Positions 5,177-64,000 of a DNA stretch of 64,000 nt are shown piece after piece. The notes beneath the pieces were generated by a model. It worked only from the letters and a program-made list of their open reading frames with translations, searched no databases and was not told where the DNA came from. Source of the DNA: Macrostomum lignano (Eukaryota); NCBI GenBank assembly GCA_002269645.1, contig NIVC01002260.1, forward strand, positions 79,386-143,385. Direction: 5' to 3'. Every line of letters begins with the position of its first letter. Position 1 is the stretch's first letter. Position numbers and translations under genes: made by a program.

Positions 5177-5312
5177 GAAAGTCCATCCCTATTTCAATTG
5201 GTTCAAGCTGATATTAAAGTACACGTACCAGTAGCCCAGCTTATACCAGCTGCAACCTGTCTCCTGTTGCAGCGTATTGAATAACAATCCAGCGCCAGCA
5301 GTCAATCCCGCC

Positions 5313-19687
<14,375 letters not shown>

Positions 19688-31250: not shown

Positions 31251-34200
31251 ATGCGTCTGACGGTGCTGCTTCTGCTCTCCGTTGTGGTGCTTCTGGCTCT
31301 CACTAGCGATGTTAGCGACGCCCGAAGATCGAAGCCGTGAGTATAGACCGAATTAGCTTTGCCAGTTACACTACTTAAAGCAGGCTAGTGTCTCAACTTG
31401 CTTGGATCAAGTTTGCTCATGTCGGCTTTCGCGAATAAATTTTCAGTCGCTGGGCCAGACGATGTTTTCGAAAGCTCGGAAAGACGGTGAAGCGTCTGAA
31501 AAAGCTGGCGAAGATCAGGAAGATCCGCGCTAGGAGGGCCAAAAGGTCCTGGGCAAAGCGCATGGTCGCATGTGAGTGCAGTCCCTAATGTATCTGTGCA
31601 GTGCATTGTCTATGGAACAAACTGTAACAAGCGAATGATTCCCGGCTCGATGCTCGACTTTCAGCCATCAAAAAGTGCGGTCGGAGGCGCTGCGGGAGGC
31701 GGCAGCGATGCGTCGTTCGGCTATCCAGGAGGAAGATTGGCCGAATCTCCCGCCGAATCGCCCGGTTACGACGCCGCTACCGCAAGAAGAAGGCCAAGAT
31801 CAATCGAAAGTTTCGAGCTGCCATTCGCCGCAGCTTGAAACGAGTGAAAACGGCGGCCGGTCGCAAAGCGCTCTCCAGCAAAAAGTCCAAGGCCAGAAAG
31901 GTTGTCAACAAGAGGAAGAAAAAGCTTCGCAGGCGAACTAGAAAACGACTGGTATCCCTGAAGCGGAAATTGCGCCGGGCTCGACGAGGGTCGAAGAGGT
32001 GCGTGTCCAGGAGACGCCGCAGCTCGCGAAGGAGACGTGGTGAGTATTCACTTTGTCGGCTGTATGAAAATACGGTGCAGTCTATGTGGCCCAATTCATA
32101 AAAAACATCGCTTTTACTTCCGATCCTACAGGCGTGCGGTGCGGCCGAAGACGCTGCAGCATTCGTCAGCGATGCGTCGCCCGACGATCCAGAAGACGAA
32201 TCCGACGAATCCGCCGCCGAATCTCCAAGCTGGGACGATCGTATCGCAAGAAGCGGGCTAAAATTAGCCGCAAGTTGCGCGCCGCCATTCGCCGCAGCTC
32301 TCGACGCGTCAAATCGCTGGCCGCATGCCAAAGGCTCTCCAAGAAGCGATCCAAGATCAGAAGGGCAGCCAATAAGCGAGTAAAGAAAGTTCGCAGGCGT
32401 TTTAGAAAGCGACTGGTATCCTTGAGACGCCGACTGAGAAGAGCACGAAGAGGATCAAGACGTTGCGTGTCTCGAAGGAGAAGACGCGGTAAGCCATGGA
32501 ATCTTTTTCGAGTAATAGACTAAAGTCACACACAGACACACATATATATATTTGCTCCTAAAGGTGTTCAATGTGGCCGAAGACGCTGCGGAAGACGTCA
32601 GCGATGCATTTCCCGACGATCGAGCAGAAGAATCCGCCGAATCCGAAACCGAATCTCCAAGGTAAGACGATCCTATCGAAAGAGACAGGCCAAAATCAGC
32701 CGAAAATTCCGCGCCGCCATTCGCCGGTATTCGCGATCGGTAAAGTCAGCAGCAGCACGTCAAAAACAAGCCAAAAAGAGGGCTAAGGCCAGAAAAATTG
32801 TCCGCAAGCGAACTAGAAAGCTTCGAAATCAAACTAAAAGAAGACTGCGATCTCTGAAGCGCAAATTGAGTAGAGCTCGGCGACAATCAAGAAGGTGCGT
32901 TTCACGAAGACTAATTAGATCCAGAAAAAGACGCTCCTTGAAACGCCGTGCCAACCAAAGAAGACGCTCAGCGAGAAGACGTGCCAACCGAAAGAGACGT
33001 GGCAGCAAGAGACGATCGAGGAGAAGCCGAAGACGTGCCAACCGAAAGAGACGTGGCAGCAAGAGACGATCGAGGAGAAGCCGAAGACGTGCCAACCGAA
33101 AGAGACGTGGCAGCAAGAGACGATCGAGGAGAAGCCGAAGACGCGCCAACCGAAAGAGACGTGGCAGCAAGAGACGATCTAGAAGAAGCCGAAGACGTGC
33201 GAACCGAAAGAGACGTGGCAGCAAGAGACGATCTAGGAGAAGCCGAAGACGTGCCACCCGAAGAAGTCGAAGAGCGAGAAGACGCGCCAACCGAAAGAGA
33301 CGTGGCAGCAAGAGACGATCGAGGAGAAGCCGAAGACGTGCCACCCGAAGAAGTCGAAGAGCGAGAAGACGCGCCAACCGAAAGAGACGTGGCAGCAAGA
33401 GACGATCTAGGAGAAGCCGAAGACGTGCCACCCGAAGAAGTCGAAGAGCGAGAAGACGCGCCAACCGAAAGAGACGTGGCAGCAAGAGACGATCTAGGAG
33501 AAGCCGAAGACGTGCCACCCGAAGAAGTCGAAGAGCGAGAAGACGCGCCAACCGAAAGAGACGTGGCAGCAAGAGACGATCGAGGAGAAGCCGAAGACGT
33601 GCCACCCGAAGAAGTCGAAGAGCGAGAAGACGCGCCAACCGAAAGAGACGTGGCAGCAAGAGGCGACCTAGAAGAAGAAGACGTGCGACCCGAAGAAGTC
33701 GAAGAGCGAGAAGACGCGCCAACCGAAAGAGACGTGGCAGTAGGAGACGATCTAGAAGAAGCAGAAAACGTGCCACTCGAAGAAGTCGAAGAGCGAGAAG
33801 ACGCGCCAACCGAAAGAGACGTGGCAGCAAGAGACGATTAAGGAGAAGCCGAAGACGTGCCAACCGAAAGAGACGTGGCAGCAAGAGACGATCTAGGAGA
33901 AGCCGAAGACGTGCCACCCGAAGAAGTCGAAGAGCGAGAAGACGCGCCAACCGAAAGAGACGTGGCAGCAAGAGACGATCGAGGAGAAGCCGAAGACGTG
34001 CCACCCGAAGAAGTCGAAGAGCGAGAAGACGCGCCAACCGAAAGAGACGTGGCAGCAAGAGGCGACCTAGAAGAAGAAGACGTGCGACCCGAAGAAGTCG
34101 AAGAGCGAGAAGACGCGCCAACCGAAAGAGACGTGGCAGCAAGAGACGATCTAGGAGAAGCCGAAGACGTGCCACCCGAAGAAGTCGAAGAGCGAGAAGA

Positions 34201-37200
34201 CGCGCCAACCGAAAGAGACGTGGCAGCAAGAGACGACCTAGAAGAAGAAGACGTGCGACCCGAAGAAGTCAAAGAGCGAGAAGACGCGCCAACCGAAAGA
34301 GACGTGGCAGCAAGAGACGATCGAGGAGAAGCCGAAGACGTGCCACCCGAAGAAGTCGAAGAGCGAGAAGACGCGCCAACCGAAAGAGACGTGGCACCAA
34401 GAGACGATCGAGGAGAAGCCGAAGACGTGCCACCCGAAGAAGTCGAAGAGCGAGAAGACGCGCCAACCGAAAGAGACGTGGCAGCAAGAGACGATCTAGG
34501 AGAAGCCGAAGACGTGCCACCCGAAGAAGTCGAAGAGCGAGAAGACGCGCCAACCGAAAGAGACGTGGCAGCAAGAGACGATCGAGGAGAAGCCGAAGAC
34601 GTGCCACCCGAAGAAGTCGAAGAGCGAGAAGACGCGCCAACCGAAAGAGACGTGGCAGCAAGAGGCGACCTAGAAGAAGAAGACGTGCGACCCGAAGAAG
34701 TCGAAGAGCGAGAAGACGCGCCAACCGAAAGAGACGTGGCAGTAGGAGACGATCTAGAAGAAGCAGAAAACGTGCCACTCGAAGAAGTCGAAGAGCGAGA
34801 AGACGCGCCAACCGAAAGACACGTGGCAGCAAGAGACGATTAAGGAGAAGCCGAAGACGTGCCAACCGAAAGAGACGTGGCAGCAAGAGACGATCTAGGA
34901 GAAGCCGAAGACGTGCCACCCGAAGAAGTCGAAGAGCGAGAAGACGCGCCAACCGAAAGAGACGTGGCAGCAAGAGACGATCGAGGAGAAGCCGAAGACG
35001 TGCCACCCGAAGAAGTCGAAGAGCGAGAAGACGCGCCAACCGAAAGAGACGTGGCAGCAAGAGGCGACCTAGAAGAAGAAGACGTGCGACCCGAAGAAGT
35101 CGAAGAGCGAGAAGACGTGCCAACCGAAAGAGACGTGGCAGCAAGAGACGATCGAGGAGAAGCCGAAGACGTGCCAACCGAAAGAGACGTGGCAGCAAGA
35201 GACGATCGAGGAGAAGCCGAAGACGTGCCAACCGAAAGAGACGTGGCAGCAAGAGACGATCGAGGAGAAGCCGAAGACGCGCCAACCGAAAGAGACGTGG
35301 CAGCAAGAGACGATCTAGAAGAAGCCGAAGACGTGCGAACCGAAAGAGACGTGGCAGCAAGAGACGATCTAGGAGAAGCCGAAGACGTGCCACCCGAAGA
35401 AGTCGAAGAGCGAGAAGACGCGCCAACCGAAAGAGACGTGGCAGCAAGAGACGATCGAGGAGAAGCCGAAGACGTGCCACCCGAAGAAGTCGAAGAGCGA
35501 GAAGACGCGCCAACCGAAAGAGACGTGGCAGCAAGAGGCGACCTAGAAGAAGAAGACGTGCGACCCGAAGAAGTCGAAGAGCGAGAAGACGCGCCAACCG
35601 AAAGAGACGTGGCAGTAGGAGACGATCTAGAAGAAGCAGAAAACGTGCCACTCGAAGAAGTCGAAGAGCGAGAAGACGCGCCAACCGAAAGACACGTGGC
35701 AGCAAGAGACGATTAAGGAGAAGCCGAAGACGTGCCAACCGAAAGAGACGTGGCAGCAAGAGACGATCTAGGAGAAGCCGAAGACGTGCCACCCGAAGAA
35801 GTCGAAGAGCGAGAAGACGCGCCAACCGAAAGAGACGTGGCAGCAAGAGACGATCGAGGAGAAGCCGAAGACGTGCCACCCGAAGAAGTCGAAGAGCGAG
35901 AAGACGCGCCAACCGAAAGAGACGTGGCAGCAAGAGGCGACCTAGAAGAAGAAGACGTGCGACCCGAAGAAGTCGAAGAGCGAGAAGACGCGCCAACCGA
36001 AAGAGACGTGGCACCAAGAGACGATCGAGGAGAAGCCGAAGACGTGCCACCCGAAGAAGTCGAAGAGCGAGAAGACGCGCCAACCGAAAGAGACGTGGCA
36101 CCAAGAGACGATCGAGGAGAAGCCGAAGACGTGCCACCCGAAGAAGTCGAAGAGCGAGAAGACGCGCCAACCGAAAGAGACGTGGCAGCAAGAGACGATC
36201 TAGGAGAAGCCGAAGACGTGCCACCCGAAGAAGTCGAAGAGCGAGAAGACGCGCCAACCGAAAGAGACGTGGCAGCAAGAGACGATCGAGGAGAAGCCGA
36301 AGACGTGCCACCCGAAGAAGTCGAAGAGCGAGAAGACGCGCCAACCGAAAGAGACGTGGCAGTAGGAGACGATCTAGAAGAAGCAGAAAACGTGCCACTC
36401 GAAGAAGTCGAAGAGCGAGAAGACGCGCCAACCGAAAGAGACGTGGCAGCAAGAGACGATTAAGGAGAAGCCGAAGACGTGCCAACCGAAAGAGACGTGG
36501 CAGCAAGAGACGATCGAGGAGAAGCCGAAGACGTGCCACCCGAAGAAGTCGAAGAGCGAGAAGACGCGCCAACCGAAAGAGACGTGGCAGCAAGAGACGA
36601 TCTAGGAGAAGCCGAAGACGTGCCACCCGAAGAAGTCGAAGAGCGAGAAGACGCGCCAACCGAAAGAGACGTGGCAGCAAGAGACGATCGAGGAGAAGCC
36701 GAAGACGTGCCACCCGAAGAAGTCGAAGAGCGAGAAGACGCGCCAACCGAAAGAGACGTGGCAGCAAGAGGCGACCTAGAAGAAGAAGACGTGCGACCCG
36801 AAGAAGTCGAAGAGCGAGAAGACGCGCCAACCGAAAGAGACGTGGCAGTAGGAGACGATCTAGAAGAAGCAGAAAACGTGCCACTCGAAGAAGTCGAAGA
36901 GCGAGAAGACGCGCCAACCGAAAGAGACGTGGCAGCAAGAGACGATTAAGGAGAAGCCGAAGACGTGCCAACCGAAAGAGACGTGGCAGCAAGAGACGAT
37001 CTAGGAGAAGCCGAAGACGTGCCACCCGAAGAAGTCGAAGAGCGAGAAGACGCGCCAACCGAAAGAGACGTGGCAGCAAGAGACGATCGAGGAGAAGCCG
37101 AAGACGTGCCACCCGAAGAAGTCGAAGAGCGAGAAGACGCGCCAACCGAAAGAGACGTGGCAGCAAGAGACGATCTAGGAGAAGCCGAAGACGTGCCAAC

Positions 37201-40200
37201 CGAAAGAGACGTGGCAGCAAGAGACGATCGAGGAGAAGCCGAAGACGTGCCACCCGAAGAAGTCGAAGAGCGAGAAGACGCGCCAACCGAAAGAGACGTG
37301 GCAGCAAGAGGCGACCTAGAAGAAGAAGACGTGCGACCCGAAGAAGTCAAAGAGCGAGAAGACGCGCCAACCGAAAGAGACGTGGCAGCAAGAGACGATC
37401 GAGGAGAAGCCGAAGACGTGCCACCCGAAGAAGTCGAAGAGCGAGAAGACGCGCCAACCGAAAGAGACGTGGCAGCAAGAGGCGACCTAGAAGAAGAAGA
37501 CGTGCGACCCGAAGAAGTCGAAGAGCGAGAAGACGCGCCAACCGAAAGAGACGTGGCAGCAAGAGACGATCTAGGAGAAGCCGAAGACGTGCCAACCGAA
37601 AGAGACGTGGCAGCAAGAGACGATCTAGGAGAAGCCGAAGACGTGCCACCCGAAGAAGTCGAAGAGCGAGAAGACGCGCCAACCGAAAGAGACGTGGCAG
37701 CAAGAGACGATCTAGGAGAAGCCGAAGACGTGCCACCCGAAGAAGTCGAAGAGCGAGAAGACGCGCCAACCGAAAGAGACGTGGCAGCAAGAGACGATCG
37801 AGGAGAAGCCGAAGACGTGCCACCCGAAGAAGTCGAAGAGCGAGAAGACGCGCCAACCGAAAGAGACGTGGCAGCAAGAGGCGACCTAGAAGAAGAAGAC
37901 GTGCGACCCGAAGAAGTCGAAGAGCGAGAAGACGCGCCAACCGAAAGAGACGTGGCAGCAAGAGACGATCTAGGAGAAGCCGAAGACGTGCCACCCGAAG
38001 AAGTCGAAGAGCGAGAAGACGCGCCAACCGAAAGAGACGTGGCAGCAAGAGACGATTAAGGAGAAGCCGAAGACGTGCCAACCGAAAGAGACGTGGCAGC
38101 AAGAGACGATCTAGGAGAAGCCGAAGACGTGCCACCCGAAGAAGTCGAAGAGCGAGAAGACGCGCCAACCGAAAGAGAAGTGGCAGCAAGAGGCGACCTA
38201 GAAGAAGAAGACGTGCGACCCGAAGAAGTCAAAGAGCGAGAAGACGCGCCAACCGAAAGAGACGTGGCAGCAAGAGACGATCGAGGAGAAGCCGAAGACG
38301 TGCCACCCGAAGAAGTCGAAGAGCGAGAAGACGCGCCAACCGAAAGAGACGTGGCAGCAAGAGGCGACCTAGAAGAAAAAGACGTGCGACCCGAAGAAGT
38401 CGAAGAGCGAGAAGACGCGCCAACCGAAAGAGACGTGGCAGCAAGAGACGACCTAGAAGAAGAAGACGTGCGACCCGAAGAAGTCGAAGAGCGAGAAGAC
38501 GCGCCAACCGAAAGAGACGTGGCAGCAAGAGACGATCTAGGAGAAGCCGAAGACGTGCCAACCGAAAGAGACGTGGCAGCAAGAGACGATCGAGGAGAAG
38601 CCGAGGACGCGCCAACCGAAAGAGACGTGGCAGCAAGAGACGATCTAGGAGAAGCCGAAGACGTGCCACCCGAAGAAGTCGAAGAGCGAGAAGACGCGCC
38701 AACCGAAGAAGACGCTCAGCGAGAAGACGTGCCAACCGAAGAAGACGCTCAGCGAGACGTGCCAACAAAAGAAGACGCTCAATGAGAAGACGCGCCAATC
38801 GTAGAAAACCTGGCAGTAAGAGACGATCTAGAAAAAGCAGAAGACGTGCCAACCGACGAAGGCGTAGAGTGAGAAGACGTGCCAACCGAAGGAGACGTGG
38901 CGGTAAGAGACGATCTAGAAGAAGCAGAAGGCGCGCCAACAGAAGAAGACGCTGGTTGAGAAGACGTGCTGACAGAAGGCGAAAACGCATTTACAGACAT
39001 AAGAGACGGATTTCTAGGAGAAAAGGTAAATATTTAATTTGAATTCTGTTGTCTTTTACTTAGGAACTTATTGGTGATCCCGTAAAAAACTTTTGCAGCA
39101 CAAAGAAGGAAACGTAGATCCTTAACCAAATGTGGCAAATTCCGTTGCGGCCGAGGTACATCGTGCTTCCGTAGGTATCGCTATTCGTCTCGGGTTAGAG
39201 CAGCCGCCACCAGGGCTTTTAGAAGCCGATCAGCTAGCGCACTGAAGCAGTTCAAAGCCAAGAAGGCAAAGGCAAATGCAAAATTTAGTGCGTACTTGAG
39301 AAGGCGAGTTGCTTCCTACACAGGTAAGTTTCATTTACCTTTCATAAATTTATTTCCTTATTCAATATTTACTTTAATTGAAAAAATCTCAACACTCATG
39401 CTTCCAACATGGAAATCGACATGCAAATTAAATTAAAACAGTATTTGATTTTTAGGTAGAAGCAACAGACAGGCTTGTGAGCACTCTTCAATCTCTATCA
39501 GATGTCCCAAAGGATACAAAATTGACATTCTGTCCGGATTCTACGGCCGCACCAACAAGACTGTCTGCCGTAATAAGGCGATGAAGTCGACGCGCTGCTC
39601 AGCAGCATCGGCAACCCCGAGAGTGAAGAAGGCATGCCAGGGTAGGCGATCCTGCCGGGTCAGCAGCAGCAACTCCGTCTTTGGAGACCCCTGCGTTGGT
39701 ACATACAAGTATCTGAAGATTTCCTACAGGTGCAAGACGTACAAACCCACCCGAAAGTTGCTGAAGGAGCGAGCTGTCAGACGGCGCCGTCACCTTGCAG
39801 TTCTGGCCCGTTTGGCTAAGCGATATGCTCAGCGACAGGCCCGAATCAAGAGAGCGTTCATCAGATACCATTCAACAGTTGGTCGATGCGCTTTCGCCAG
39901 AGCCAGTTCAGGTATCTCTCTTCATTTTAAATTAAAACCAATTTTTTCCGATTAGAGTTGCTGGACTTGATGCATCAGTGATTTTCACCACATGAATATT
40001 TCAGCCATCTGCAAACGAATCAGCTGCGGAAGAAGACGCCGCTGTGTGCTAAGAAGAAAGCGCTTTATCGGCAAGGTGGCTTATCGCCCAGCCTGCGTCC
40101 GAAGACCGCGCCGTAAGTGATTGAATCATTTAGTATGTACTGCTTATAAAGTACAGCAGAACTCACTTTAGTCCGTCCCCATGCAACTCAACACCAGGAC

Positions 40201-47740: not shown

Positions 47741-48112
47741 GTCGATTAGTGCTAAAAAGCGGAATACTGCTAGTGCAGCGTCATTCTACTTGAGTTGGCC
47801 ACGAGTCTGGGCTGAGAGCCCACTCAGAACCACTGTGATGTAAATGCTTTCAGAGCGAGTGGAAGAGCTCGAGAGTTGCGGGTTTAGTGATCGTTGAGTT
47901 TTGAACAAGAATCATTCACTACCATCGGATATTCATTGAAGCGATTGGTTAATTCACCTCATGATTTCTGAGCCTAATTATTTTAAGCCCAGCCTTAGGT
48001 GCTGATAAGCGACAATCAGAAATTTTATGTAACATCAGTGGCGTACGTGACAGGAGCTCAACTTTGGCCACCTCTGGGACGAAGCAGCTACTGGCTTGAG
48101 ACAGGTCGAAAC

Positions 48113-49045
48113 GCCCACCAAGAGCCAGGGCCGCCCACCAAGAGCCAGAGGCGCCCACCAAGAGCCAGGGCCGCCGACCAAGAGCCAGGGCCGCCCACCA
48201 AGAGCCAGAGGCGCCCACCAAGAGCCAGGGCCGCCGACCAAGAGCCAGGGCCGCCCACCAAGAGCCAGAGGCGCCCACCAAGAGCCAGAGGCGCCCACCA
48301 AGAGCCAGAGGCGCCCACCAAGAGCCCGGGCCACCCACCAAGAGCCAGAGGCGCCCACCAAGAGCCAGGGCCGCCCACCAAGAGCCAGGGCCACCCACCA
48401 AGAGCCAGGGCCGCCCACCAAGAGCCAGGGCCGCCCACCAAGAGCCCGGGCCGCCCACCAAGAGCCAGGGCCGCCCACCAAGAGCCAGAGCCGCCCACCA
48501 AGAGCCCGGGCCGCCGACCAAGAGCCAGGGCCGCCCACCAAGAGCCAGGGCCGCCGACCAAGAGCCAGGGCCGCCGACCAAGAGCCCGGGCCACCCACCA
48601 AGAGCCAGAGGCGCCCACCAAGAGCCAGGGCCACCCACCAAGAGCCAGGGCCACCCACCAAGAGCCAGGGCCGCCGACCAAGAGCCCGGGCCACCCACCA
48701 AGAGCCAGGGCCGCCCACCAAGAGCCAGAGCCGCCCACCAAGAGCCAGGGCCGCCGACCAAGAGCCAGGGCCACCCACCAAGAGCCAGAGGCGCCGACCA
48801 AGAGACAGAGGCGCCCACCAAGAGCCAGAGGCGCCCACCAAGAGCCAGGGCCACCCACCAAGAGCCAGAGGCGCCGACCAAGAGACAGAGGCGCCCACCA
48901 AGAGCCAGAGGCGCCCACCAAGAGCCAGGGCCACCGACCAAGAGCCAGAGGCGCCCACCAAGAGCCAGGGCCGCCGACCAAGAGCCAGAGGCGCCCACCA
49001 AGAGCCAGAGGCGCCCACCAAGAGCCAGGGGCGCCCACCAAGAGA
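48113..49045. repeat. GC-rich minisatellite, 20 bp unit ccaagagccagggccgccca
   Basis: About 46 copies. Confidence 0.96.
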
Positions 49046-49626
49046 CAGCAGATATTTGCGCCCCTTGGGCCGGGGTTGCGGCCCCTTTAATACGCCACTG
49101 ACGCACAGTCGTGCTCGGTTGAAAATGGTGTTGCATGGCGAAGTCGCCACCTGGTCTGTAATCTGCATGCAGGGACCGCTGGTAGCGACCTGAGGACAAG
49201 ACAGTTGGTTTCTTGGAAAATGTCCCTAAAGTCTCAGATTGCCAGGAGAGCACACATGACTAATTTAGATCTGATAGCGACTAAACTATATTTTTTTACA
49301 TCCAGTCTGCCCTGTTGCTAAGTGTATTTCTTTCAAATCTTTATTTGTGAGGAGATTGATTTCATATTATTATTATATTTTCTGTTATGTAAAGCTTAAA
49401 TATTTTTTGTTTAAATGCCTTTGACCTTCTCCTCTTATCAAGCTCAGCTAAGGCATTGGATTGATATGCATGTCTGCATGTGCGCCATCGACTCCACACA
49501 CCTGCATACCATTGGATTTGGACAAAGCTGATTTTGTCCGGGTAACCACGTGCGTTTGCTTTACATGGTTTTACATACCTGAATTTCCACATGGACAAAC
49601 AGATTCAGTTTTCATTGACTGGCTGA

Positions 49627-50871: not shown

Positions 50872-51335
50872 GTGTCTTGGCGTCCCTGTGTCTTGGTTGG
50901 CGCCCTGTGTCTTGGTTGGCGCCCTGTGTCTTGGTTGGCGCCCTGTGTCTTGGTTGGCGCCCTGTGTCTTGATTGGCGTCCCTGTGTCTTGGTTGGCGCC
51001 CTGTGTCTTGATTGGCGTCCCTGTGTCTTGGTTGGCGTCCCTGTGTCTTGGTTGGCGCCCTTGTGTCTTGATTGGCGTCCCTGTGTCTTGGTTGGCGTCC
51101 CTGTGTCTTGGTTGGCGCCCTGTGTCTTGATTGGCGTCCCTATGTCTTGGTTGGCGTCCCTGTGTCTTGGTTGGCGCCCCTGTGTCTTGATTGGCGTCCC
51201 TGTGTCTTGATTGATGCCCCTGTGTCTTGATTGGCGTCCCTGTGTCTTGATTGATGCCCCTGTGTCTTGATTGGCGTCCCTGTGTCTTGACTGGCGTCCC
51301 TGTGTCTTGGTTGGCGCCCTGTGTCTTGGTGGGCG
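50872..51335. repeat. Minisatellite, 19-20 bp unit ttggcgtccctgtgtcttgg
   Basis: About 23 copies. Confidence 0.95.
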
Positions 51336-51977
51336 TCCCTGCCGCCCCCTGTCTCTTGGGCCGTTGAATGCCCCGTCCAAGATGTGACAAACCGTTCGCG
51401 ACTGCTTCGGTAGCAAGATGACTAGCTAACTGACTTGAGAATTTGATTGTTAGATAATGAAATAAGAAAAAAGGAAATATTTTTATTATCTTCTGAGCCA
51501 CATGTTTATACCCTTAGGTTACTTACCGGTACAAGGTCATCGACGCTAAAAAGTTCATGAAATACTGGCGACCAAACGGTTACGCTCGAGCAAACACGTA
51601 AATTGGGCCACTGCAATTCGTATTTCAGATGGACAGAATGAAATTTAAAAAAACACAACACGCGATCAAATTCCTGTGCAGTATCAAATTACGAGCGTAC
51701 GATAAAATCTTTCCAACTTTCTCCGGATTTCAGAGCCTTAAAATGCAAGTTCGTATTGGCATTTTTCTTTTTTTGTGAGCACAGAAACAGCTCAGACGTT
51801 CAATCTTGATATACGAGCTGCCACTTGGTTTCAATCGCAGTGGTTTCCGAATGTCCGTATGAATGATTCCCCAGAAGTCTGAGGCCTGGACCAATTGCAT
51901 CCCCATTTCCCACAGCTTGCAAAAGTCGGATGCTAAGTCCTAAACAGCTCAGGTAGCCTAGCAAAGTTTCAAAGCTA

Positions 51978-53424: not shown

Positions 53425-56400
53425 ATGCGTCTCACAGTGCTGTTTCTTCTTTCTGTTTGTCTTTTTCTTGCGCTAACCAGCGACGTTGGAGAGTCCTGGG
53501 GGTGAGTTTGAGTCATATTTTTGTCTTCGAATCATTCCTGCCCTTATTTTTAACAGCAGGCTTTTTCAATTAGCGTTGAAGGTGCTGAACAATCCTAACG
53601 CCTTTTTTCCACTCGCTTTCAGATGCGGATGGGCGTGCAAACGCATGCGTCGCATCCGAGCGAGAGCCGCCAGGCTGAGGCGGCTGGCGATTCAGAGGGC
53701 CAGGGCCCTCAGGCGCCGCATCTTGCTGGCTCGGCGGAGAGCAGCCAGAGCTGCGGCAAGAGCGCGGGCCAGAGCCAGAGCTTGGGCTCGAGCCAGGGCC
53801 AGAGCTGCTGCTAGAGCCAGGGCCAGAGCCAGGGCCATTGCTAGAGCCAGGGCTAGAGCTTTAGCCAAACGGTTGGCAAGAGCCCGCGCAAGAGCTCGCG
53901 CAATTGCAAGAGCCAGAGCTAGAGCTTTGGCCAGACGTGTGGCAAGAGCACGCGCAAGAGCTCGCGCAATCGCTAGAGCCAAGGCTAAAGCTTTGGCCAG
54001 GCGTGTGGCAAGAGCACGCGCAAGAGCTCGCGCCAAGGCAAGGGCTTTGGCCAGAGCAGCGGCTAGAGCAGCGGCCAGAGCAAGGGCCAGAGCTAAAGCT
54101 CGTGCCCGGGCCATCGCCAGGCGGTTGGCAAAAGCACGAGCCAGAGCTAGAGCAATCGCTAGAGCCAGGGCTAGAGCTTTGGCCAGACGTTTGGCAAGAG
54201 CTCGCGCAAGAGCTCGCGCAATCGCCAAAGCCAGGGCTAGGGCTTTGGCCAAGGCAGCGGCGAGAGCAAGGGCCAGAGCCAGAGCTCGTGCCCGGGCCGT
54301 CGCCAGAGCCTTGGCACGTGCTAAAGCTAGAGCCCGGGCTAAGGCAAGAGCTGTGGCTAGAGCATTGGCTAGAGCAAGAGCCAGAACGAGAGCACTGGCC
54401 CGAGCAAAAGCCAGAGCCCTGGCCAGGGCAGTGGCCAGAGCCAAAGCTAGAGCAAGAGCCAGAGCTAAAGCATTGGCCAGAGCCAAAGCCCTAATTCGTG
54501 CCCGAGCCCGATCTTTGGCGGCGGCGGCGGCGAGAGTAAAAGCAAGAGCCACAGCCCGAGCGAGAGCCTGGGCCAGGAGACGAGCTCTAGCCCTGAAGCG
54601 AGCCAAAGCCACAGCGAGACGAAGAGCCAGAGCTCTGGCCAGGGCCGTCGCTAAAGCAAGTAGAAGAGCAAAAGCTTTAGCTAGAGCCAAGGCTAGAAGA
54701 GTGGCCAGAGCGGCGGCAAGAGCGGCGAAGAAGATTCGAGACTGGTTCCGAAGGCGGGCCAAGCGCGGAAGAATCATCAAGAGATCAATCTACCGTCGTG
54801 TGAAGCGGCTCAAAACCCGTTTTGTCAAGTTCGTCAAGCGTCTGTTCCGCAAATGCCCACGAGGATACAAGAAGCGTGGAAATCGTTGCTACCGCCTTTA
54901 CTGCCCGAAGCCGTACGTCCGCCGAGGCGCCCGGTGCGTTCGCTACTACCGAATCTACAAGCCCCGAAAATGGTGCCCCAAAGGTTTCCGTCGAAGAGGC
55001 AGCCGGTGCATCAAGCGCATGCGCATCATCTGCGCAGCTGGCTATCGAGTTTACCGCGGCAGATGTCACCTGGTCCGGTGCCGTCGTGGATTCATCAAGA
55101 TCGGTAGAAGCTGCCGCCGCAGCTGCAAGCCCGGATTCCGACTCCGTGGCCGTTTTTGCGTTCGCTATCGCTTCCGATGCCCCAAGAACTTTTATTACCA
55201 TCGAAGGCGCTGCGTCCGATTCCGCCGAGGATCGACAAGGTAATTTTTGAAACTGCGAGTAGCATAGCATTTGAAATTGTTGCAATGCAAACCTAAGATG
55301 CGCGTGCAATTTTTTACTGTAGATGCCCGAGAGGATACCGCAGGAGAGGCAGAAAGTGCTTGCGCACCGTTCGATCGTGCCCGCTTAACTACCGCCGCCG
55401 AGGCAGGCGGTGTGTCAAGCGCTGTGCAAGCGGCCGGGTGCCTCGGCGCATTCGCCGCGGAGTGATCAGGTGCGTTGTCGTCACGTCCAAGTGCCCACTC
55501 GGTTACAGTCTGCGACGCGTGCGACGCGGAAGGCGCTACAGGTACTTTCCTTTAGTAGCAAATGTGAATACAAGATACTTTAAGAACAAAATAAATACTA
55601 AGTATTACATCTGCTTCAGGTTCCGCTGCGTCATCAATGCTGGAAGATGTGCACGTGGATTCAGACGAGTCAAGCGATACAGACGTGGCTTTTCTTGCGT
55701 TCGCATTGTCTGCCCGAGACACTACAGGAAACGCGGATCTCGATGCGTCTACCGACCACCCAAGGGTGGCAGCCGAAGATGTCCGGCAGGTTACAAAAAG
55801 GTGCGAGGCGTCTGCAAGAAGCTGAACTGCCCGGCCGGCTACGTGCGCAGGGGATCGCGCTGTGTGCACACCAGGTGCCCCCGTTTCTACCGCCGAGTGG
55901 GCAGATTCTGTGCCCGGATACGCTTTGTTGGCAAATGCCCAAGAGGCTGGCGCAGGACTGGCCGTCTCTGCCGCAGACGTGTGTGCCCGAGCGGCTTCAA
56001 GAAAGTTGGTCGCTACTGCATGCGTAAGTCCTTAACATAAATTGCAGTTCTCACTAAAGATGCAGTCACTTGAGCACTGGGTAATGCAGATAACCCACAA
56101 CGCTTTAGCGATTTGAATCAAATAGAAATAGAATTGCGGCTTGCGATTTGCGGATATTTTATCCGACCGAACCAATTTTTCAATAAATATTTACAGGAAA
56201 ATCCTGTCCATCTGGATTTGTCCGACGTGGTCGGGCTTGCTACAGAGGTGAGTTGATCCAAGCTCCTAATTGATGAATGATTCTCAGTTTTTCGAGTAAA
56301 GCGCGCAGCGACAGTTATTAAATATTGTTTTAATATTAAAATTTTAGCCCGATGCGCTCGCGGCTTCAAAAAGATGGGAAGCGTGTGCATCAGTGAGTGA

Positions 56401-59400
56401 CTGACGGTTTTGATTTAAGTTTTAGTTTTGAACCAGTGTACAGAACGCATTATTGTAACGAATTTAATTATTCGCCCTCCAGGACGCTGTCCAAGCGGCA
56501 CCAGAACGACGCGGTATTTCTGCATCCGCAAGCGTTGCCCGAAATTCTTCAGGCGCGTTGGGCAGAGCTGCGTTAGAGGTTTGATGATCTTGATGCTGAC
56601 TAGATATCTTAACAATGCTGGATTAGATCTGTGCAGACAATAGTTCAAGAAATTTTCACCTGTTCCTTATGATGACCTACTTCAGCTCGCTGTCCCTCCG
56701 GCTACGTGGCCCGCTCCTACCGCACTAGAGTGTATCTCAAGCATCGTGTTACCGGATACACCAAGAAGTGCACCTGCATTAATGGCAAATCAAGTGCCAA
56801 GCCACGGGCAAACTCCATCGATGTGGCTTTTGTAGTTGACGTGAGCGGCAGCATGGGCCGAGTCATCAGCGCCATCAAGAAAAACATTGTCAACGTCATC
56901 AACGTCAACGCTAAGTCCAGAGTGGTACGTAAAATAAAATCAGCGGAAATTCCCCCTCATCCATCAGGACAATTTGAAAATGATTAATCTTAACCTTCCA
57001 CTGTGTCTCCTCAATTCAGGTGGACAAATTCATTCTCGTGCCGTTCGCGGACCCAAAAGTGGGACCAGTGACAATCAGCAGAGGTCGGTCCCGCCTGCAC
57101 AAGAGCAGGCTTATCAAAGCGGTCAGGCGCATGCGAGCCAGCGGTGGCGGCGACTGTCCGGAGATGAGCCAGTCCGGCATGTACGAGGCGCTCCGGCGCG
57201 TCAAGCGAAACTCCATCGTCTACGTGTTCACTGATGCCAGTCCGTCGAGACGAGACAAACGGTTGGAAATTTCACTACTTGATTAAACAGTTATCTTTAA
57301 AATATTTGCTACAAATAAACAATCATGCAATAAACCCTTCTAGTCTAGTGCAACAAGAAAATGAAGTAAAAATAAACCATTTGAAACTCCTATTACAGAC
57401 GACAGGCCGACGTGCTCCGGCTGTCGAAGAGCAAAAACGTGCAGCTCAACTTCCTGCTCACCGGTCCAATGTGCGGCAAAAGGAATTCGTACAAAAACTT
57501 GTCAAAGAAATCGAAAGGTGCCTGGATCAAAATGAAAAGGTCGACAACGTACCGCGTTTTGCGCTTCCTCAGCAAGGCCATCCCCAAGGGCGCCACCGCT
57601 CTGAGGATGCTGAACCGGCGCGGACTATCCTCATTCATCAAAGCAAGGAAAACATGCACTTGCCACCGCATTGCCAGAATGAAGGCCCGTTACAAGTACG
57701 TCAGCTCGGTGAAATGCTTTGTCAGGCCTCGGCCAAGCACTGGCCGCTGCTCCAGAATCCTGAACCAGCGAAGGCGACTAAGACGCGCGGCCCAGCTTTA
57801 CCGGCGTCGCATGCGAATTGGCAGGCGGTCAGCGCGGCGAAGAAGCGCCAGGCGATTCCGGGCAGTCAGAAAGCAACTGCGAGCGATTGCAAGAAACCTG
57901 AGACGCTGCTACAGAAGCAAAACAAGAAGTAAGACGGGCAGCTTCAAAATTTTCAAAATATAAAATTATTTAAATGCTAAGGAAAATTCAGAATTAAAAA
58001 AACTATATTTTCGTCAAAGTACTCTCTTGCAAAAGGAACTAACAAAAAGTCACTAGGATTAAGTTCTAGAGTGGAGTGTATGAGACCAGTATATTATATA
58101 ATGCTGTGTCAATCTACAGAATAGTTGAAGCAAAGAGACTGATGAAGAAAACATAAAACTCGTTTCTTTTTAATAACCTTCAGATTTGTGCAGAAAGGTC
58201 AGATGCGGACGGGGTAGACGCTGTTTCGTCCGAAACATGCGCCGCCGTTTCGGATCTGTCTACCGCTACGTCAGAACCGCATCCTGCAGGCCTGTCAGGA
58301 GTAAGAATTTTTTTGTAATCCTTCTGGTTCATTCAAGTATTTTAAGGAGACAAATTCAGTCTCTGAATAACATCACTTTGTGGCAAAAACTGTTTTATAG
58401 ATCTGTGCAGAAGAGTCCGGTGCAAGTCGGGTTATCGGTGCCGAGTTTCATACCAGCGCAGAATAGTGACCCGCAGGGTGACTCGATTCGTCAGAAAGTG
58501 TCCATGCCGCAAGGTCCTGGTTAAGCCATCCGCCTCCAAAAAGAAGACAGGCCTGGTCGACATGGCGTTCGTTGTAGATACCACAGGAAGCATGGGCAGA
58601 GTCATCAAAGGAATCCGGTCAAGCATCAAGCAGATTGTGGCTGCAAACAGGCGTACAGTCAGTCGCTTCGTCATCTCTGCTTTCAATGATCCAAAGGTAA
58701 GGATTAAAACACAACAAGTGAAGTATGGACTCTCCAATCCCAATAACAGAAAATACAATGACACTTGGGATCAACGTCGTTTTTTTTCAGGTTGGTCCAA
58801 TTACTGTCAGCTCAAGAGCCAGAACAATTTTTGCCGCAGTGAACAGACTTAAACCCAGAGGAGGTGGCGACTGTCCTGAAAGGAGCATGAGCGGTATTCT
58901 TGCTGCCGCTAAGCGAGTGAAGTCCGGATCGGTCATCTACGTGTTCACGGATGCAAGCGCAAAAGACAGAGGAAGGAGGCGTCAAGTAAGCTAATGGATA
59001 AGTTATTGTGTTCAGTTTCTGATTAGTAGTCCTTGGCAACTGCACAAAAGGTTTCCTGTTTTTAAAAAAAATGCATACTTTCCACTACTTTCAGGTTCGA
59101 GAAATTGTGAAACGGAAGTCCCTCCAAGTGATGTTCATCATCACAGGTCGATTGTGCGGCCGAAGCTACCGCAAGGAGTACCAATATGTGTCGAGAGGCA
59201 ACGGCCGGGTTATAAAAACAACAAGTGGACGCATCAAGAAGGTGCTCAGCTTCATCCAAAAAGCGGTCAAGTTAGGAAGCCGCCGACTGAGGCGCTTGAA
59301 CCTCTCTCACCTGTCGAAGTTCATCCGCAAGTGCCACTGTCGCCGCGTCAAACAGAGGGTCACAAGAAGATACACTAGAACCAGGCGAGTGGCCAAGTGC

Positions 59401-62400
59401 ACAAAGAGACCAAAGGGAGCTTGCTCATCGCGAAGATGCAGTAAGGGCTACAAGTGTGTGCACTATCGAGTAAAAACACGTCGAGGCAGCGGACTTAAAA
59501 CACGATGTGTCAGCATCAATAGTGAGTATTTCTTCTCCAATATAACCCTGCCTCTTCACTAAACTTTAACCTTTGCTCAAAAACTCAACAAAACTTTCTC
59601 TAGACCCATGCAAGAAAATGCGTTGTCAGAAAGGACGCAAATGCATTGTGCGCTTCTTCGGAAGAGTCTACAAAAAAGGAAAACGGCGTGTTAAGTTGGT
59701 GCGCAAAAAAGCCGTCTGCGTCAAGCGAATATCAAGTAAGATATATTTAATAGGCTGAAAAACTTTGACCTGTAAGAATAATTGCAACACTTCAACATCA
59801 TCAAAAACCTGTAGACCTGTGCAGAAGAGTTCGTTGTGGAAGATACAGGCGCTGCATTGTCCGAAGACTGAGAAGAGGATCACGACGCATGGTAGCACGA
59901 TGTGTAGGTCCAAAGCCAAAAGGTAAGCTCTAAGCAGAAAAATTGGTATTTTAAATTCATCTTGAGCCAGCTAAAACTTTTGCCCCAGTGCGAGACTCCA
60001 CTCACTTGGTAGGCAAACGCCACTCAAAATATTAAAGACGAAAAACAATTATTGCACGATTATTCCTAGTAACAATCGAATAACTAGGTAGGCAGGCAAA
60101 GAAACAAAAAAAAATCAACTCCACTTTGCGCAGTGTAAAAACAAGAAAAAAACATTTTAAAAACTTACAGGTAAGTGCGGCCGACGAACCTGCCGAAGGA
60201 ACCAGAAGTGCGTGACACGAAGATCTAGCAGGCGAATCCGAAGCCTCAGAAGAAGCATCAACAAACTGCGACGAGCTCACAAGAGCAGGACTGTCGCCGA
60301 GAGACGACGACATGCAGCCTCCATCCGAAAGAGCCGAACACCAGCTCGCTACCGCCGTAAGCAATACTACTGAAACTGCTTTATTTATTTGCTTTCGGTT
60401 GTTTACGAGTATATCACGCTTTTACGAACGGTGCATTATTTACCGCTTCAGGAGTGCGAGTGAAGCACGCTTGCGAGGGCAAATCTCTGACCATCAGATG
60501 TCCATCCAGATACGTCATCCGGGTGCTGCGCGGATTCTATGGCAGAACATCGAACAAATACTGCGCTCGAGGACCCCGCAAGACATACAAGTGCAGCAGC
60601 GGCCGAGCCAACAAAGTCATCGCTTCCAAGTGCAACAACCGACGAGCGTGCAGGGTGCGAAGCAACAACGCCGTCTTCGGAGATCCTTGCCGCGGAACAT
60701 ACAAGTACATGACCGTGAGATACAGATGCCAGCTGGCTTCATCGGTTGTGTCTAGCTACGCGAAGCGCAGAGCTCGACTTGCACGACTGCACAAGAAACG
60801 ATTGAACGCTCTTCGATCGAGGCACAGGCGCAGAGTCGCTCGCTGATCCGACTGCTGAGACGAGCTAGACGAGGATCGAAGAGATGCGTCCGAAGGAGAC
60901 GACCTTCCAGAGGTTAGTCGGCTATTCGGTCGACCGTTTATTAAAATCAAAAAACTACAGAAGTAAACTATTGATGCCCCACCTAGTAAATTGCTTCCTC
61001 AAATATCTAGTGAGACTTTGAGCTACGGATTTTAGAGTTGAAGCACTTTCACCCAAGTTCATACGTTGCTCCTCACCGAAATACAACATACTCAGGCAAG
61101 AAATGCGGCCGACGAACCTGCCGAAGGAACCAGAAGTGCGTGACACGAAGATCTAGCAGGCGAATCCGAAGCCTCAGAAGAAGCATCAACAAACTGCGAC
61201 GAGCTCACAAGAGCAGGACTGTCGCCGAGAGACGACGACATGCAGCCTCCATCCGAAAGAGCCGAACACCAGCTCGCTACCGCCGTAAGCAATACTACTG
61301 AAACTGCTTTATTTATTTGCTTTCGGTTGTTTACGAGTATATCACGCTTTTACGAACGGTGCATTATTTACCGCTTCAGGAGTGCGAGTGAAGCACGCTT
61401 GCGAGGGCAAATCTCTGACCATCAGATGTCCATCCAGATACGTCATCCGGGTGCTGCGCGGATTCTATGGCAGAACATCGAACAAATACTGCGCTCGAGG
61501 ACCCCGCAAGACATACAAGTGCAGCAGCGGCCGAGCCAACAAAGTCATCGCTTCCAAGTGCAACAACCGACGAGCGTGCAGGGTGCGAAGCAACAACGCC
61601 GTCTTCGGAGATCCTTGCCGCGGAACATACAAGTACATGACCGTGAGTACAGATGCCAGCTGGCTTCATCGGTTGTGTCTAGCTACGCGAAGCGCAGAGC
61701 TCGACTTGCACGACTGCACAAGAAACGATTGAACGCTCTTCGATCGAGGCACAGGCGCAGAGTCGCTCGGCTGATCCGACTGCTGAGACGAGCTAGACGA
61801 GGATCGAAGAGATGCGTCCGAAGGAGACGACCTTCCAGAGGTTAGTCGGCTATTCGGTCGACCGTTTATTAAAATCAAAATAACTACAGAAGTAAACTAT
61901 TGATGCCCCACCTAGTAAATTGCTTCCTCAAATATCTAGTGAGACTTTGAGCTACGGATTTTAGAGTTGAAGCACTTTCACCCAAGTTCATACGTTGCTC
62001 CTCACCGAAATACAACATACTCAGGCAAGAAATGCGGCCGACGAACCTGCCGAAGGAACCAGAAGTGCGTGACACGAAGATCTAGCAGGCGAATCCGAAG
62101 CCTCAGAAGAAGCATCAACAAACTGCGACGAGCTCACAAGAGCAGGACTGTCGCCGAGAGACGACGACATGCAGCCTCCATCCGAAAGAGCCGAACACCA
62201 GCTCGCTACCGCCGTAAGCAATACTACTGAAACTGCTTTATTTATTTGCTTTCGGTTGTTTACGAGTATATCACGCTTTTACGAACGGTGCATTATTTAC
62301 CGCTTCAGGAGTGCGAGTGAAGCACGCTTGCGAGGGCAAATCTCTGACCATCAGATGTCCATCCAGATACGTCATCCGGGTGCTGCGCGGTTTCTATGGC

Positions 62401-64000
62401 AGAACATCGAACAAATACTGCGCTCGAGGACCCCGCAAGACATACAAGTGCAGCAGCGGCCGAGCCAACAAAGTCATCGCTTCCAAGTGCAACAACCGAC
62501 GAGCGTGCAGGGTGCGAAGCAACAACGCCGTCTTCGGAGATCCTTGCCGCGGAACATACAAGTACATGACCGTGAGGTACAGATGCCAGCTGGCTTCATC
62601 GGTTGTGTCTAGCTACGCGAAGCGCAGAGCTCGACTTGCACGACTGCACAAGAAACGATTGAACGCTCTTCGATCGAGGCACAGGCGCAGAGTCGCTCGC
62701 TGATCCGACTGCTGAGACGAGCTAGACGAGGATCGAAGAGATGCGTCCGAAGGAGACGACCTTCCAGAGGTTAGTCGGCTATTCGGTCGACCGTTTATTA
62801 AAATCAAAATAACTACAGAAGTAAACTATTGATGCCCCACCTAGTAAATTGCTTCCTCAAATATCTAGTGAGACTTTGAGCTACGGATTTTAGAGTTGAA
62901 GCACTTTCACCCAAGTTCATACGTTGCTCCTCACCGAAATACAACATACTCAGGCAAGAAATGCGGCCGACGAACCTGCCGAAGGAACCAGAAGTGCGTG
63001 ACACGAAGATCTAGCAGGCGAATCCGAAGCCTCAGAAGAAGCATCAACAAACTGCGACGAGCTCACAAGAGCAGGACTGTCGCCGAGAGACGACGACATG
63101 CAGCCTCCATCCGAAAGAGCCGAACACCAGCTCGCTACCGCCGTAAGCAATACTACTGAAACTGCATTACGTGATTGCTCAGGTTGTTTACGAGTATATC
63201 ACGCTTTACGAACGGTGCATTATTTACCGCTTCAGGAGTGCGAGTGAAGCACGCTTGCGAGGGCAAATCTCTGACCATCAGATGTCCATCCAGATACGTC
63301 ATCCGGGTGCTGCGCGGATTCTATGGCAGAACATCGAACAAATACTGCGCTCGAGGACCCCGCAAGACATACAAGTGCAGCAGCGGCCGAGCCAACAAAG
63401 TCATCGCTTCCAAGTGCAACAACCGACGAGCGTGCAGGGTGCGAAGCAACAACGCCGTCTTCGGAGATCCTTGCCGCGGAACATACAAGTACATGACCGT
63501 GAGATACAGATGCCAGCTGGCTTCATCGGTTGTGTCTAGCTACGCGAAGCGCAGAGCTCGACTTGCACGACTGCACAAGAAACGATTGAACGCTCTTCGA
63601 TCGAGGCACAGGCGCAGAGTCGCTCGGCTGATCGACTGCTGAGACGAGCTAGACGAGGATCGAAGAGATGCGTCCGAAGGAGACGACCTTCCAGAGGTTA
63701 GTCGGCTATTCGGTCGACCGTTTATTAAAATCAAAATAACTACAGAAGTAAACTATTGATGCCCCACCTAGTAAATTGCTTCCTCAAATATCTAGTGAGA
63801 CTTTGAGCTACGGATTTTAGAGTTGAAGCACTTTCACCCAAGTTCATACGTTGCTCCTCACCGAAATACAACATACTCAGGCAAGAAATGCGGCCGACGA
63901 ACCTGCCGAAGGAACCAGAAGTGCGTGACACGAAGATCTAGCAGCGCGAATCCGAAGCCTCAGAAGAAGCATCAACAAACTGCGACGAGCTCACAAGAGC
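53425..64000 (+). CDS. Gene B: giant secreted Arg-rich protein (Arg-Ala rod, about 23 CPxGY repeats, 2 hemicentin-type vWA domains, FOLN modules, 4+ tandem FOLN-SUEL units); continues beyond the window
   Basis: Signal peptide MRLTVLFLLSVCLFLALTSDVGES, paralogous to gene A. Exons 53425-53501, 53623-55239, 55323-55541, 55620-56023, 56197-56247, 56348-56392, 56483-56578, 56686-56924, 57020-57261, 57399-57928, 58184-58300, 58401-58696, 58791-58985, 59095-59521, 59604-59735, 59815-59922 join in frame, then repeat exon pairs from 60171; each SUEL exon carries a 1 nt deletion. Confidence 0.8.
56815..57590 (+). other. vWA domain 1 of gene B (hemicentin/VWA7 type), split by two introns
   Basis: DVAFVVDVSGSM (MIDAS DxSxS), FILVPFADPKVGP, GGGDCPEMS, IVYVFTDA, VQLNFLLTG. 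Confidence 0.9.
58555..59270 (+). other. vWA domain 2 of gene B (hemicentin/VWA7 type), split by two introns
   Basis: DMAFVVDTTGSM, FVISAFNDPKVGP, GGGDCPERS, IYVFTDASAKD, LQVMFIITG. Confidence 0.9.
60171..64000 (+). repeat. About 928 bp tandem duplication of a two-exon FOLN+SUEL lectin unit including introns (4 full copies plus a partial fifth)
   Basis: FOLN exons 60171-60356, 61096-61284, 62025-62213, 62954-63142, 63881-end; SUEL exons 60452-60912, 61380-61840, 62309-62769, 63236-63696; introns near-identical. Confidence 0.95.

Follow-up and report, generated by a model that had tools for sequence, protein, structure and literature searches.

Two von Willebrand factor A (vWA) domains, both encoded by one very large plus-strand gene, were found in a 64,000-nucleotide stretch of the genome of the flatworm Macrostomum lignano (contig NIVC01002260.1 of assembly GCA_002269645.1, positions 79,386 to 143,385, forward strand), which was analysed as a whole and is called the window below. 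Each domain lies inside a small cysteine module and is flanked on both sides by a pair of closely spaced cysteines, a clamp. Judged from the translated exons, this arrangement, which we call a cassette, follows a regular order: base cysteine, N-terminal arm (N-arm), Cys-x-Cys (CxC) clamp, a linker of ~20 residues, the vWA domain, a linker of ~18 residues, a second CxC clamp, C-terminal arm (C-arm) and base cysteine. We consider it probable, with moderate confidence, that the two arms run antiparallel as a ribbon held by three nested disulfide rungs, which would present the vWA domain as a head on a stalk.

The vWA domains and their splice model

The open reading frames (ORFs) in the window are interrupted by GT/AG introns, and the cassettes were pieced together from three plus-strand frames at canonical splice sites. 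Three exons each (Table 1) join to give 336 amino acids in unit 1 and 305 in unit 2, and the module boundaries are in phase 1. An earlier reading of this DNA from its sequence only had placed the two units at 56686-57928 and 58401-59521, and these limits agree with our splice model. The model is supported by the M. lignano protein PAA50029.1 (P0130, gene BOX15_Mlig000911g8), which is 97–99% identical to the window and has the same junctions: the phase-1 acceptor of cassette 1, giving ...CVR-A-RCPSGY, and the inner junctions SRV/VDKF and DKR/RQAD are identical in both. It is supported further by a related genomic contig (L001) that does not have the NDPK/VGP intron and reads FNDPR-VGP straight through, and by a paralogue (A0A1I8GDF5 / A0A1I8JAD7) that holds the complete module 2 in one protein. 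Another relative, P0001, is 71% identical to cassette 2. The C side of cassette 1 is preserved in the paralogues P0129 and P0147 (CRC, 17 residues, Cys), and that of cassette 2 in P0129 (CKC, 19 residues, Cys). We also noticed that PAA50029.1 changes its reading frame after ...AWIKMK inside the first vWA domain (window 57520-57545), where the frame of the window aligns with all homologues; the frameshift reflects an assembly or homopolymer error made in the older assembly, or else it marks a broken second copy.

Both units are hemicentin-type vWA domains. When compared with the Pfam family PF25106 (VWA_4, hemicentin/VWA7-type vWA; gathering cut-off 27 bits), module 1 scored 119.1 bits (1.9e-34) and module 2 scored 132.9 bits (1.1e-38). 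The family motifs are present in both, DVSGSM in module 1 and DTTGSM in module 2, GGGDCPE and FTDAS in each, and these positions vary little or not at all across the alignments. With hemicentin-1 and the VWA7-type domains they have in common DxTGSM, GGGDCPE, FTDASAKD, an internal pair of cysteines and the fold. An AlphaFold2 model of module 2, built from a multiple sequence alignment of 97 sequences, contains a confident vWA core of canonical fold (residues ~50-222) with a predicted local distance difference test (pLDDT) above 90 and with six strands and seven helices. When this model was compared with known structures by Foldseek, the integrin I and beta-I domains, collagen VI N5, Rpn10 and the vWA domain of the mussel byssus protein PTMP1 were matched at E ~1e-8, and VWF A1 was also among the matches. 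When the PDB was searched by sequence, with module 2 and with a profile as queries, only a chance match and a weak match to a collagen VI vWA domain came up, and no solved close relative.

It had been claimed that the residues of the metal-ion-dependent adhesion site (MIDAS) are retained. This holds for motifs 1 and 3 (DxSGS or DxTGS and the Asp of FTDAS), whereas the usual Thr of motif 2 is replaced by Asp (in GGGDCPE), as throughout PF25106. The metal-site motifs, together with the entire vWA core, are conserved among paralogues that are only ~40–70% identical. The heads keep the metal-site residues of their own family (DxSGS/DxTGS, GGGD, TDA), and they may bind a metal ion.

A family of clamped cassettes

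A motif search found every motif quoted in the sequence-only reading at its given position. In module 1 these are CPSGY (56691-56705), KKCTC (56763-56777), DVSGS (56838-56852), KTCTC (57649-57663) and SSVKC (57703-57717). Those of module 2 are CRRVRCKSGYRC (58406-58441), RRIVTRRVTRFVR (58457-58495), RKCPC (58493-58507) and DTTGS (58577-58591) on the N side, and RKCHC (59326-59340), RVKQRVTRRYTRTRR (59344-59388) and RVAKC (59386-59400) on the C side. Orthologous, paralogous and other homologous modules retain the flanks. The nesting of the vWA domains in small cysteine modules, with conserved paired cysteine motifs, was borne out by the alignments of homologues, in which the C-side linker also contains a conserved G-x2-SF-x2-FP.

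The names given to the host modules fared less well. The label FOLN for module 2 corresponds to a sub-threshold match: the Pfam profile (PF09289) scored 13.4 bits against a cut-off of 21.1 (E 0.091) and matched only profile positions 1-12 of 22. The 13.4 bits also apply to the small four-Cys module between the cassettes, and a neighbouring module stayed below the threshold for EGF (15.3 against 21.5 bits). The cysteine pattern C-x4-C-x5-C ... C(-x-C), in which 1-3 and 2-4 bonds would be expected, occurs in module 2 as well as in numerous others, and module 1 is without its first and third cysteines (C1 and C3). The 'CPSGY module' proposed around the first vWA domain is at its place and is better described as a member of a series of two-Cys CPxGY hairpins, at least 18 in number, the others of which lie just upstream; no Pfam family was matched by these hairpins.

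A census of CxC motifs covered the Lys/Arg-rich frames from 32 kb onward. It gave five real motifs, three of which are flanks of the vWA domains, and a further match at 58636 that is off frame. KKCTC at 56763, the remaining flank, escaped it only because the Lys+Arg content of its segment was below the filter; the separate motif search located it. The other two motifs, both on the plus strand, are CKC at 40314, at the end of the four-Cys module that immediately precedes the first SUEL lectin, and CRC at 55318, which starts a CPRGY hairpin.

Profile searches with PF25106 gave 563 matches in one case and 7094 in another, and a small group among them is alone in having the domain flanked by cysteines on each side. 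About 18 modules have the cassette layout (P0002/3, P0009, P0011, P0017, P0048, P0125-P0129, P0137, P0147 and P0264). All the named proteins among them are from M. lignano (A0A1I8JEG0, JEL7, GPA0, GGX9, I2M0, I8N4, GUE1, GDF5, PAA86075.1 and BOX15_Mlig029053g1), and the remainder are short contigs. In the PF25106 members outside this group that we read, hemicentin/VWA7-like and bacterial-type (for example P0131, P0132, P0134 and P0217), the flanking CxC, the arms and the enclosing cysteine module are absent, and the vWA domain is N-terminal or free-standing.

Arm lengths were counted as residues from the base cysteine to the clamp on the N side and from the clamp to the base cysteine on the C side. 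At least nine modules are short cassettes with 13 residues on the N side and 7 on the C side; the corresponding values are 25 and 19 for module 2 of the window and its paralogue, and 25 and 17 for module 1 and its paralogues. The short form, of ~230 residues, is small and self-contained. The spacing of the clamp is mostly CxC, and CC, CxxC, Cx3C, Cx5C and Cx7C also occur among paralogues; the residue between the two cysteines may be T, P, H, S, R, K, G, I or E. In the cassettes counted by hand the number of cysteines is even (8 in module 1, 10 in module 2), and one homologue, P0264, has an odd number. One member of the family, P0127 (PAA86075.1, 4112 amino acids), is a giant secreted protein rich in Lys and Cys that opens with two short-arm clamped cassettes; by eye we also recognised in it a vWD/C8/TIL-like region (CFAIGDPHYKTFD...) and ShK-like motifs.

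Probable pairing of the arms and clamps

In the arrangement that we favour, the turn of a two-Cys CPxGY hairpin (cassette 1) or of a four-Cys EGF/FOLN-like knot (cassette 2) would be replaced by a complete PF25106 vWA domain. The two arms would form a two-stranded, Arg/Val/Thr-rich beta-ribbon, with two CxC-to-CxC bonds beside the head and one bond at the base as its rungs. As the N and C termini of a vWA domain are neighbours, such a stalk can carry the domain at its tip. The stalk would measure ~7 residues per strand in most paralogues and ~19 in the window gene and its paralogue, the latter corresponding to roughly 6 nm by our own estimate of ~3.3 Å per residue. Both the disulfide connectivity and the rigidity of the long-arm ribbon are what we infer from the following observations.

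The lengths of the two arms are coupled. Compared with the short cassettes, the arms of module 2 are longer by 12 residues on both sides, and those of module 1 by 12 and 10. The N-arm exceeds the C-arm by 6 residues in the short cassettes and in module 2, which equals the 'PxGYxx' head of a plain hairpin; module 1 is off by 2. Between paralogues the arm lengths (19/19 and 25/17) remain unchanged despite changes in sequence.

The composition of the arms would also suit strands. The sequence-only reading had called those of the second vWA domain rich in Thr, Val and Arg, and beta-forming residues are indeed abundant in the arms: the fraction of V/I/Y/F/W/T is 0.36–0.47 and that of Ala+Leu at most 0.08, unlike the other Lys/Arg loops of the gene (0.10–0.21 and 0.14–0.29), whose composition looks helical. 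Lys and Arg make up 36–47% of the arms. With the arms set antiparallel and the clamps fixing the register, one face repeatedly shows V-V, V-Y and V-I pairs, in the window as well as in the paralogue.

A strand without a turn is suggested by the distribution of glycine. The loops of the plain hairpins are 10 residues long in 18 of 18 cases and carry a turn Gly in 16 of the 18. After the head, a Gly is found in none of 12 short cassette N-arms and in three of six long arms, where it lies five residues from the clamp. The contrast between hairpins and cassettes gives p 3e-5 by Fisher's test, a value in which independence is overstated since the modules are related. A central Gly is also present in the 20-residue loops between the third and fourth cysteines (C3 and C4) of two neighbouring four-Cys modules.

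A structural indication came from the complete short-arm homologue P0011, for which AlphaFold2 returned a model with a mean pLDDT of 86. It has an unbroken strand at residues 28-38 that ends at the first N-side clamp cysteine, and another at residues 245-255 that runs from the second C-side clamp cysteine through the base cysteine; both are 11 residues long with a pLDDT of 76–82. The plain CPDGY hairpin at the C-terminus of the same model is read as EE-----EE. If the two strands of the P0011 model pair end to end, the base cysteine would be set opposite the position two residues after the Tyr of the head, as in that plain hairpin.

Several observations weigh against this arrangement. In the AlphaFold2 model of module 2, which the sequence-only reading had suggested as a check, the confident vWA core stands beside arms and clamps drawn as coil of low confidence (pLDDT 39–56), so that the long stalk is without direct support. 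The beta-ribbon proposed in that reading is partly supported, by the coupled arm lengths, the beta-forming residues, the missing turn Gly and the strands of the short-arm model, and not by the model of the long arms of module 2. A regular ladder of two rungs is hard to reconcile with clamp spacings that range from CC to Cx7C, and the coupled lengthening of the arms was probably a single evolutionary event. Finally, the N side of module 2 is by itself a complete FOLN pattern, C-x4-C-x5-C-x19-C-x-C, that aligns with the neighbouring small module (C3-x20-C4), and a topology with local disulfides is therefore allowed.

Such a topology is the alternative that survives best, and we judge it unlikely. 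Each arm would be folded back on itself, with bonds from the base cysteine to the first clamp cysteine on the N side and from the second clamp cysteine to the base cysteine on the C side, and the inner cysteines would make a single bond between the two sides, after the pattern of the one N-to-C disulfide in VWF A1 and A3. On this view the N side of module 2 would be a normal FOLN/EGF-like unit with C-x-C at its end, like those of follistatin-type domains. Its cysteine pattern is that of FOLN with a longer loop (PF09289, of which Pfam aligned profile positions 1-12), and the adjacent small module, C-x4-C-x5-C-x20-C, has a similar composition. Two hairpins account for the parity of the cysteines equally well, would accommodate variable clamp spacing more easily with a single cross-link, and agree with the lack of a confident AlphaFold2 ribbon for the long arms. 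On the other hand, the arms of P0011 are single unbroken strands, and strand-turn-strand is seen only in the plain hairpin of that model. The cassette N-arms are without the turn Gly of the plain hairpins, whereas the neighbouring 20-residue C3-C4 loops have their central Gly, and both arms became longer by ~12 residues together.

The clamps could also be reactive thiols or disulfide-exchange sites that cross-link and cure a secreted material, or the ligands of a four-thiolate metal site, which we consider very unlikely. CGLC motifs are used in the multimerisation of VWF, and Mia40 has a redox-active CPC. One of the clamps (58499-58507) is a CPC, the protein is a candidate component of a secreted matrix or glue, a material that would benefit from covalent curing, the homologue P0264 has its odd cysteine, and the clamp spacings include CxxC. 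However, there is always one pair per side of the same domain, with an even count in each cassette, and the pairs are positioned at the ends of length-matched arms. The residue between the cysteines is not conserved, which speaks against a catalytic motif, and spacings from CC to Cx7C would not be tolerated by a metal site.

Least probable of all is that the arms are flexible charged tethers whose cysteines merely close a loop around a vWA domain that lacks a specific ligand and acts as a spacer or packing element in a protein of storage granules: the low AlphaFold2 confidence of the long arms, their Lys+Arg content, the low-complexity Lys/Arg repeats that dominate the rest of the gene and the frameshift in PAA50029.1 (if it means weak constraint and not an assembly error) would suit it, whereas the conserved metal-site motifs and vWA core, the exact arm lengths and the beta-forming residues would not.

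The elements of the proposed ribbon are, taken singly, already known. In VWF A1 and A3 one disulfide ties the N and C termini together, and in the integrin alpha subunit the I-domain is inserted in a loop of a host domain; termini tied or nested in this way present the metal-site face away from the host. The cassettes share with them the use of adjacent vWA termini, and differ in having two cysteines per side and a base pair. Compared with integrins, the host is a tiny hairpin module and not a beta-propeller, and the proposed stalk is long, two-stranded and of a length that varies between paralogues. The follistatin-type domain (a FOLN hairpin ending in C-x-C, followed by Kazal) and the major hairpin of EGF have the same C-x4-C-x5-C ... 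C-x-C followed by a globular unit. In EGF, C3 and C4 face each other, and when two 19-residue arms are counted, C3 of the cassette would oppose C4 across the hairpin in the same manner. Unlike in these domains, the FOLN match of the cassette is below threshold, the hairpin is ~4 times longer, the globular unit is a vWA domain and the chain returns through a second CxC. In protegrin-1 the CxC...CxC cysteines are bonded 6-15 and 8-13, and theta-defensins are likewise beta-hairpin peptides with a cystine ladder. Their Arg-rich antiparallel hairpins with two neighbouring cross-strand CxC disulfides have the geometry proposed here for the clamp; they are free peptides of 16–18 residues without sequence homology to the cassette, whose putative ladder would form the neck below a domain of 170 residues.

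Disulfide-tied vWA ends and the insertion of vWA domains in loops (VWF A1/A3, integrins) are classical, and CxC ladders on Arg-rich hairpins have their precedent in protegrins. What appears to be undescribed is their combination: a hemicentin-type vWA domain carried on the tip of a CPxGY or EGF-like hairpin, with two cysteines per side, a base pair and a stalk length that varies among paralogues. This combination seems to mark a multigene family in one flatworm lineage.

The gene, its neighbours and a possible role

The gene that carries both cassettes runs from ~31.25 kb to beyond the end of the window, and its product is predicted to be a secreted, extremely basic, modular protein. Its features are collected in Table 1.

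Table 1. Features of the vWA-cassette gene in window coordinates
Feature	Position	Strand	Details and evidence
Gene start: Met and putative signal peptide MRLTVLLLLSVVVLLALTSDVSDA	31251..31322	+	Translation, with a hydrophobic leader
2058-amino-acid open exon with Lys/Arg repeats (RRANRKRRGSKRRSRRSRRR...), part of the vWA-cassette gene	32866..39042	+	ORF list, tandem-repeat analysis
Run of plain two-Cys hairpins, C-P-x-G-[YFW]-x-[KR]-x-G-x-x-C	55360..56643	+	ORFs; directly upstream of cassette 1
Cassette 1, exon 1	56686..56924	+	Base Cys 56691-56693, 25-residue N-arm 56694-56768, CTC clamp 56769-56777, linker, vWA strand 1 with DVSGS 56838-56852
Cassette 1, exon 2	57020..57261	+	vWA core; GGGDCPE 57143-57163, FTDAS 57227-57241
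Cassette 1, exon 3	57399..57928	+	C-terminal half of vWA, GPMCG 57463-57477, CTC clamp 57655-57663, 17-residue C-arm 57664-57714, base Cys 57715-57717, Cys-closed Lys/Arg loop
Small four-Cys EGF/FOLN-like module (LCRKVRCGRGRRC-x20-C) between the cassettes	58184..58300	+	Single phase-1 exon; kept in L001 and P0129
Cassette 2, exon 1	58401..58696	+	C1-x4-C2-x5-C3 head 58406-58441, 19-residue N-arm 58442-58498, CPC clamp 58499-58507, linker, vWA strand 1 with DTTGS 58577-58591
Cassette 2, exon 2	58791..58985	+	vWA core; GGGDCPE 58860-58880, FTDAS 58944-58958
Cassette 2, exon 3	59095..59521	+	C-terminal half of vWA, GRLCG 59146-59160, CHC clamp 59332-59340, 19-residue C-arm 59341-59397, base Cys 59398-59400, four-Cys module 59422-59521
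Repeats spaced by ~929 bp: four-Cys head, Lys/Arg arm, SUEL lectin, Lys/Arg arm, closing Cys	60000..64000	+	ORF periodicity 60312 / 61240 / 62169

After the signal-peptide exon and an intron, the first FOLN-like four-Cys modules with Lys/Arg loops are encountered. The long exon that follows consists almost entirely of Arg, Lys, Ser, Ala and Asn repeats, with a base period of 87 bp and higher-order periods of 171–399 bp; its AT skew reaches 0.75, and spurious long ORFs are seen in its other frames and on the opposite strand. Further four-Cys modules and one SUEL lectin lie at 39–45 kb. The region 53.5–56.6 kb is occupied by an (Ala-Arg)n block and then by the run of at least 18 plain two-Cys hairpins, which the gene model of PAA50029.1 connects to cassette 1. 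The block itself, at 53600-54750 (+), is an (Ala-Arg)n / ARARAKA low-complexity coding segment standing directly before the hairpins.

Downstream of cassette 2, the repeats match the Pfam family SUEL_Lectin (2.6e-20). There are at least four near-identical copies, spaced by ~929 bp, at 60000-64000 (+), each with an exon for the four-Cys head and an exon for the lectin, and one copy (~61.6 kb) deviates at the lectin end. The lectin is placed in the C3-C4 loop between two Lys/Arg arms. The sequence-only reading had drawn a parallel between the vWA stalks and this lectin, and it is valid for the topology, in which both domains lie in the loop of a cysteine module. It does not extend to the arms, which in the lectin units are rich in Ala, Leu and Arg, look helical and have no CxC pair. 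The gene as a whole appears to follow one design rule, a small cystine module with a hairpin loop that is filled either by charged filler or by a globular domain (SUEL lectin or vWA).

The stalks would probably present heads for protein or ligand binding from within a secreted matrix of polycationic character, and a possible use of such a matrix is suggested by the known adhesive proteins of the same species. Flatworm temporary adhesion is among the few reversible biological glues for which proteins have been identified. Mlig-ap1, a giant secreted protein of M. lignano with Lys/Arg-rich regions of isoelectric point above 14 and with lectin and von Willebrand-type domains, is the cohesive protein in temporary adhesion (PMC6410801). 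The cohesion of the glue comes from the positively charged regions and binding domains of Mlig-ap1 and is counteracted by negatively charged molecules (PMC6410801, PMC9229212), and the charged regions of the Lys/Arg-rich cohesive protein were called enigmatic by the authors (PMC8621496). The window gene resembles Mlig-ap1 as a giant secreted Lys/Arg-rich protein, whereas its SUEL lectins and vWA domains differ from the C-type lectin, vWD, C8, TIL and EGF domains of Mlig-ap1 and from the TSP-1 and LDL domains of Mlig-ap2. vWA proteins are known from other bioadhesives too, and a further likeness is to PTMP1 of the mussel byssus, a two-vWA matrix protein of a bioadhesive and a structural match to module 2.

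By analogy with Mlig-ap1, the polycationic matrix may be an adhesive or cohesive secretion, and we favour a role of the vWA domains as binding or cross-linking heads displayed from it. Two results speak against an adhesive role: the published antibody-target peptides of Mlig-ap1 and Mlig-ap2 are absent from the window, and no paper on the vWA-cassette locus was found in a literature search. We also considered whether the gene could be Mlig-ap1 or Mlig-ap2 itself. This was ruled out, as a search of the window in all frames returned none of their six published antibody-target peptides and the domain set is different (PMC6410801, PMC8621496); the comparison covers the part of the gene that lies in the window.

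It is put forward only tentatively, as a picture that in its entirety may well be wrong, that the cassette is an invention of the macrostomid lineage: a tunable Arg-rich ribbon with a cystine ladder (~7 or ~19 residues per strand) and a metal-site vWA head, multiplied into a secreted family. Its long-stalk form would belong to an undescribed giant polycationic glue or gland protein, whose heads would cross-link partners beyond the charged brush. The window shows a second, uncharacterised giant polycationic protein of M. lignano, predicted to be secreted and modular in build. Its cassette would offer a natural example of the display of domains on disulfide-stapled stalks that vary in length, and could attract workers in protein engineering and bioadhesion. 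Should expression of the gene turn out to be in other places, such as the rhabdite, shell or prostate glands, the tie to adhesion would be lost while the structural point stands.

Upstream of the cassette gene, a PRPF8-like pre-mRNA splicing factor gene was recognised by eye at 5277-18172 (+) from its highly conserved exon translations, and its introns are dense in minisatellites with units of 20–44 bp. A prokaryotic reading of the window was rejected on account of this gene and of the GT/AG introns that break up the ORFs. Minisatellite arrays with units of 11–28 bp in 20–115 copies were also seen at 1075-2792, 23860-25226, 26403-28121, 47094-49048 and 50877-51341. These arrays are intergenic and intronic and are the source of many long false ORFs on both strands.

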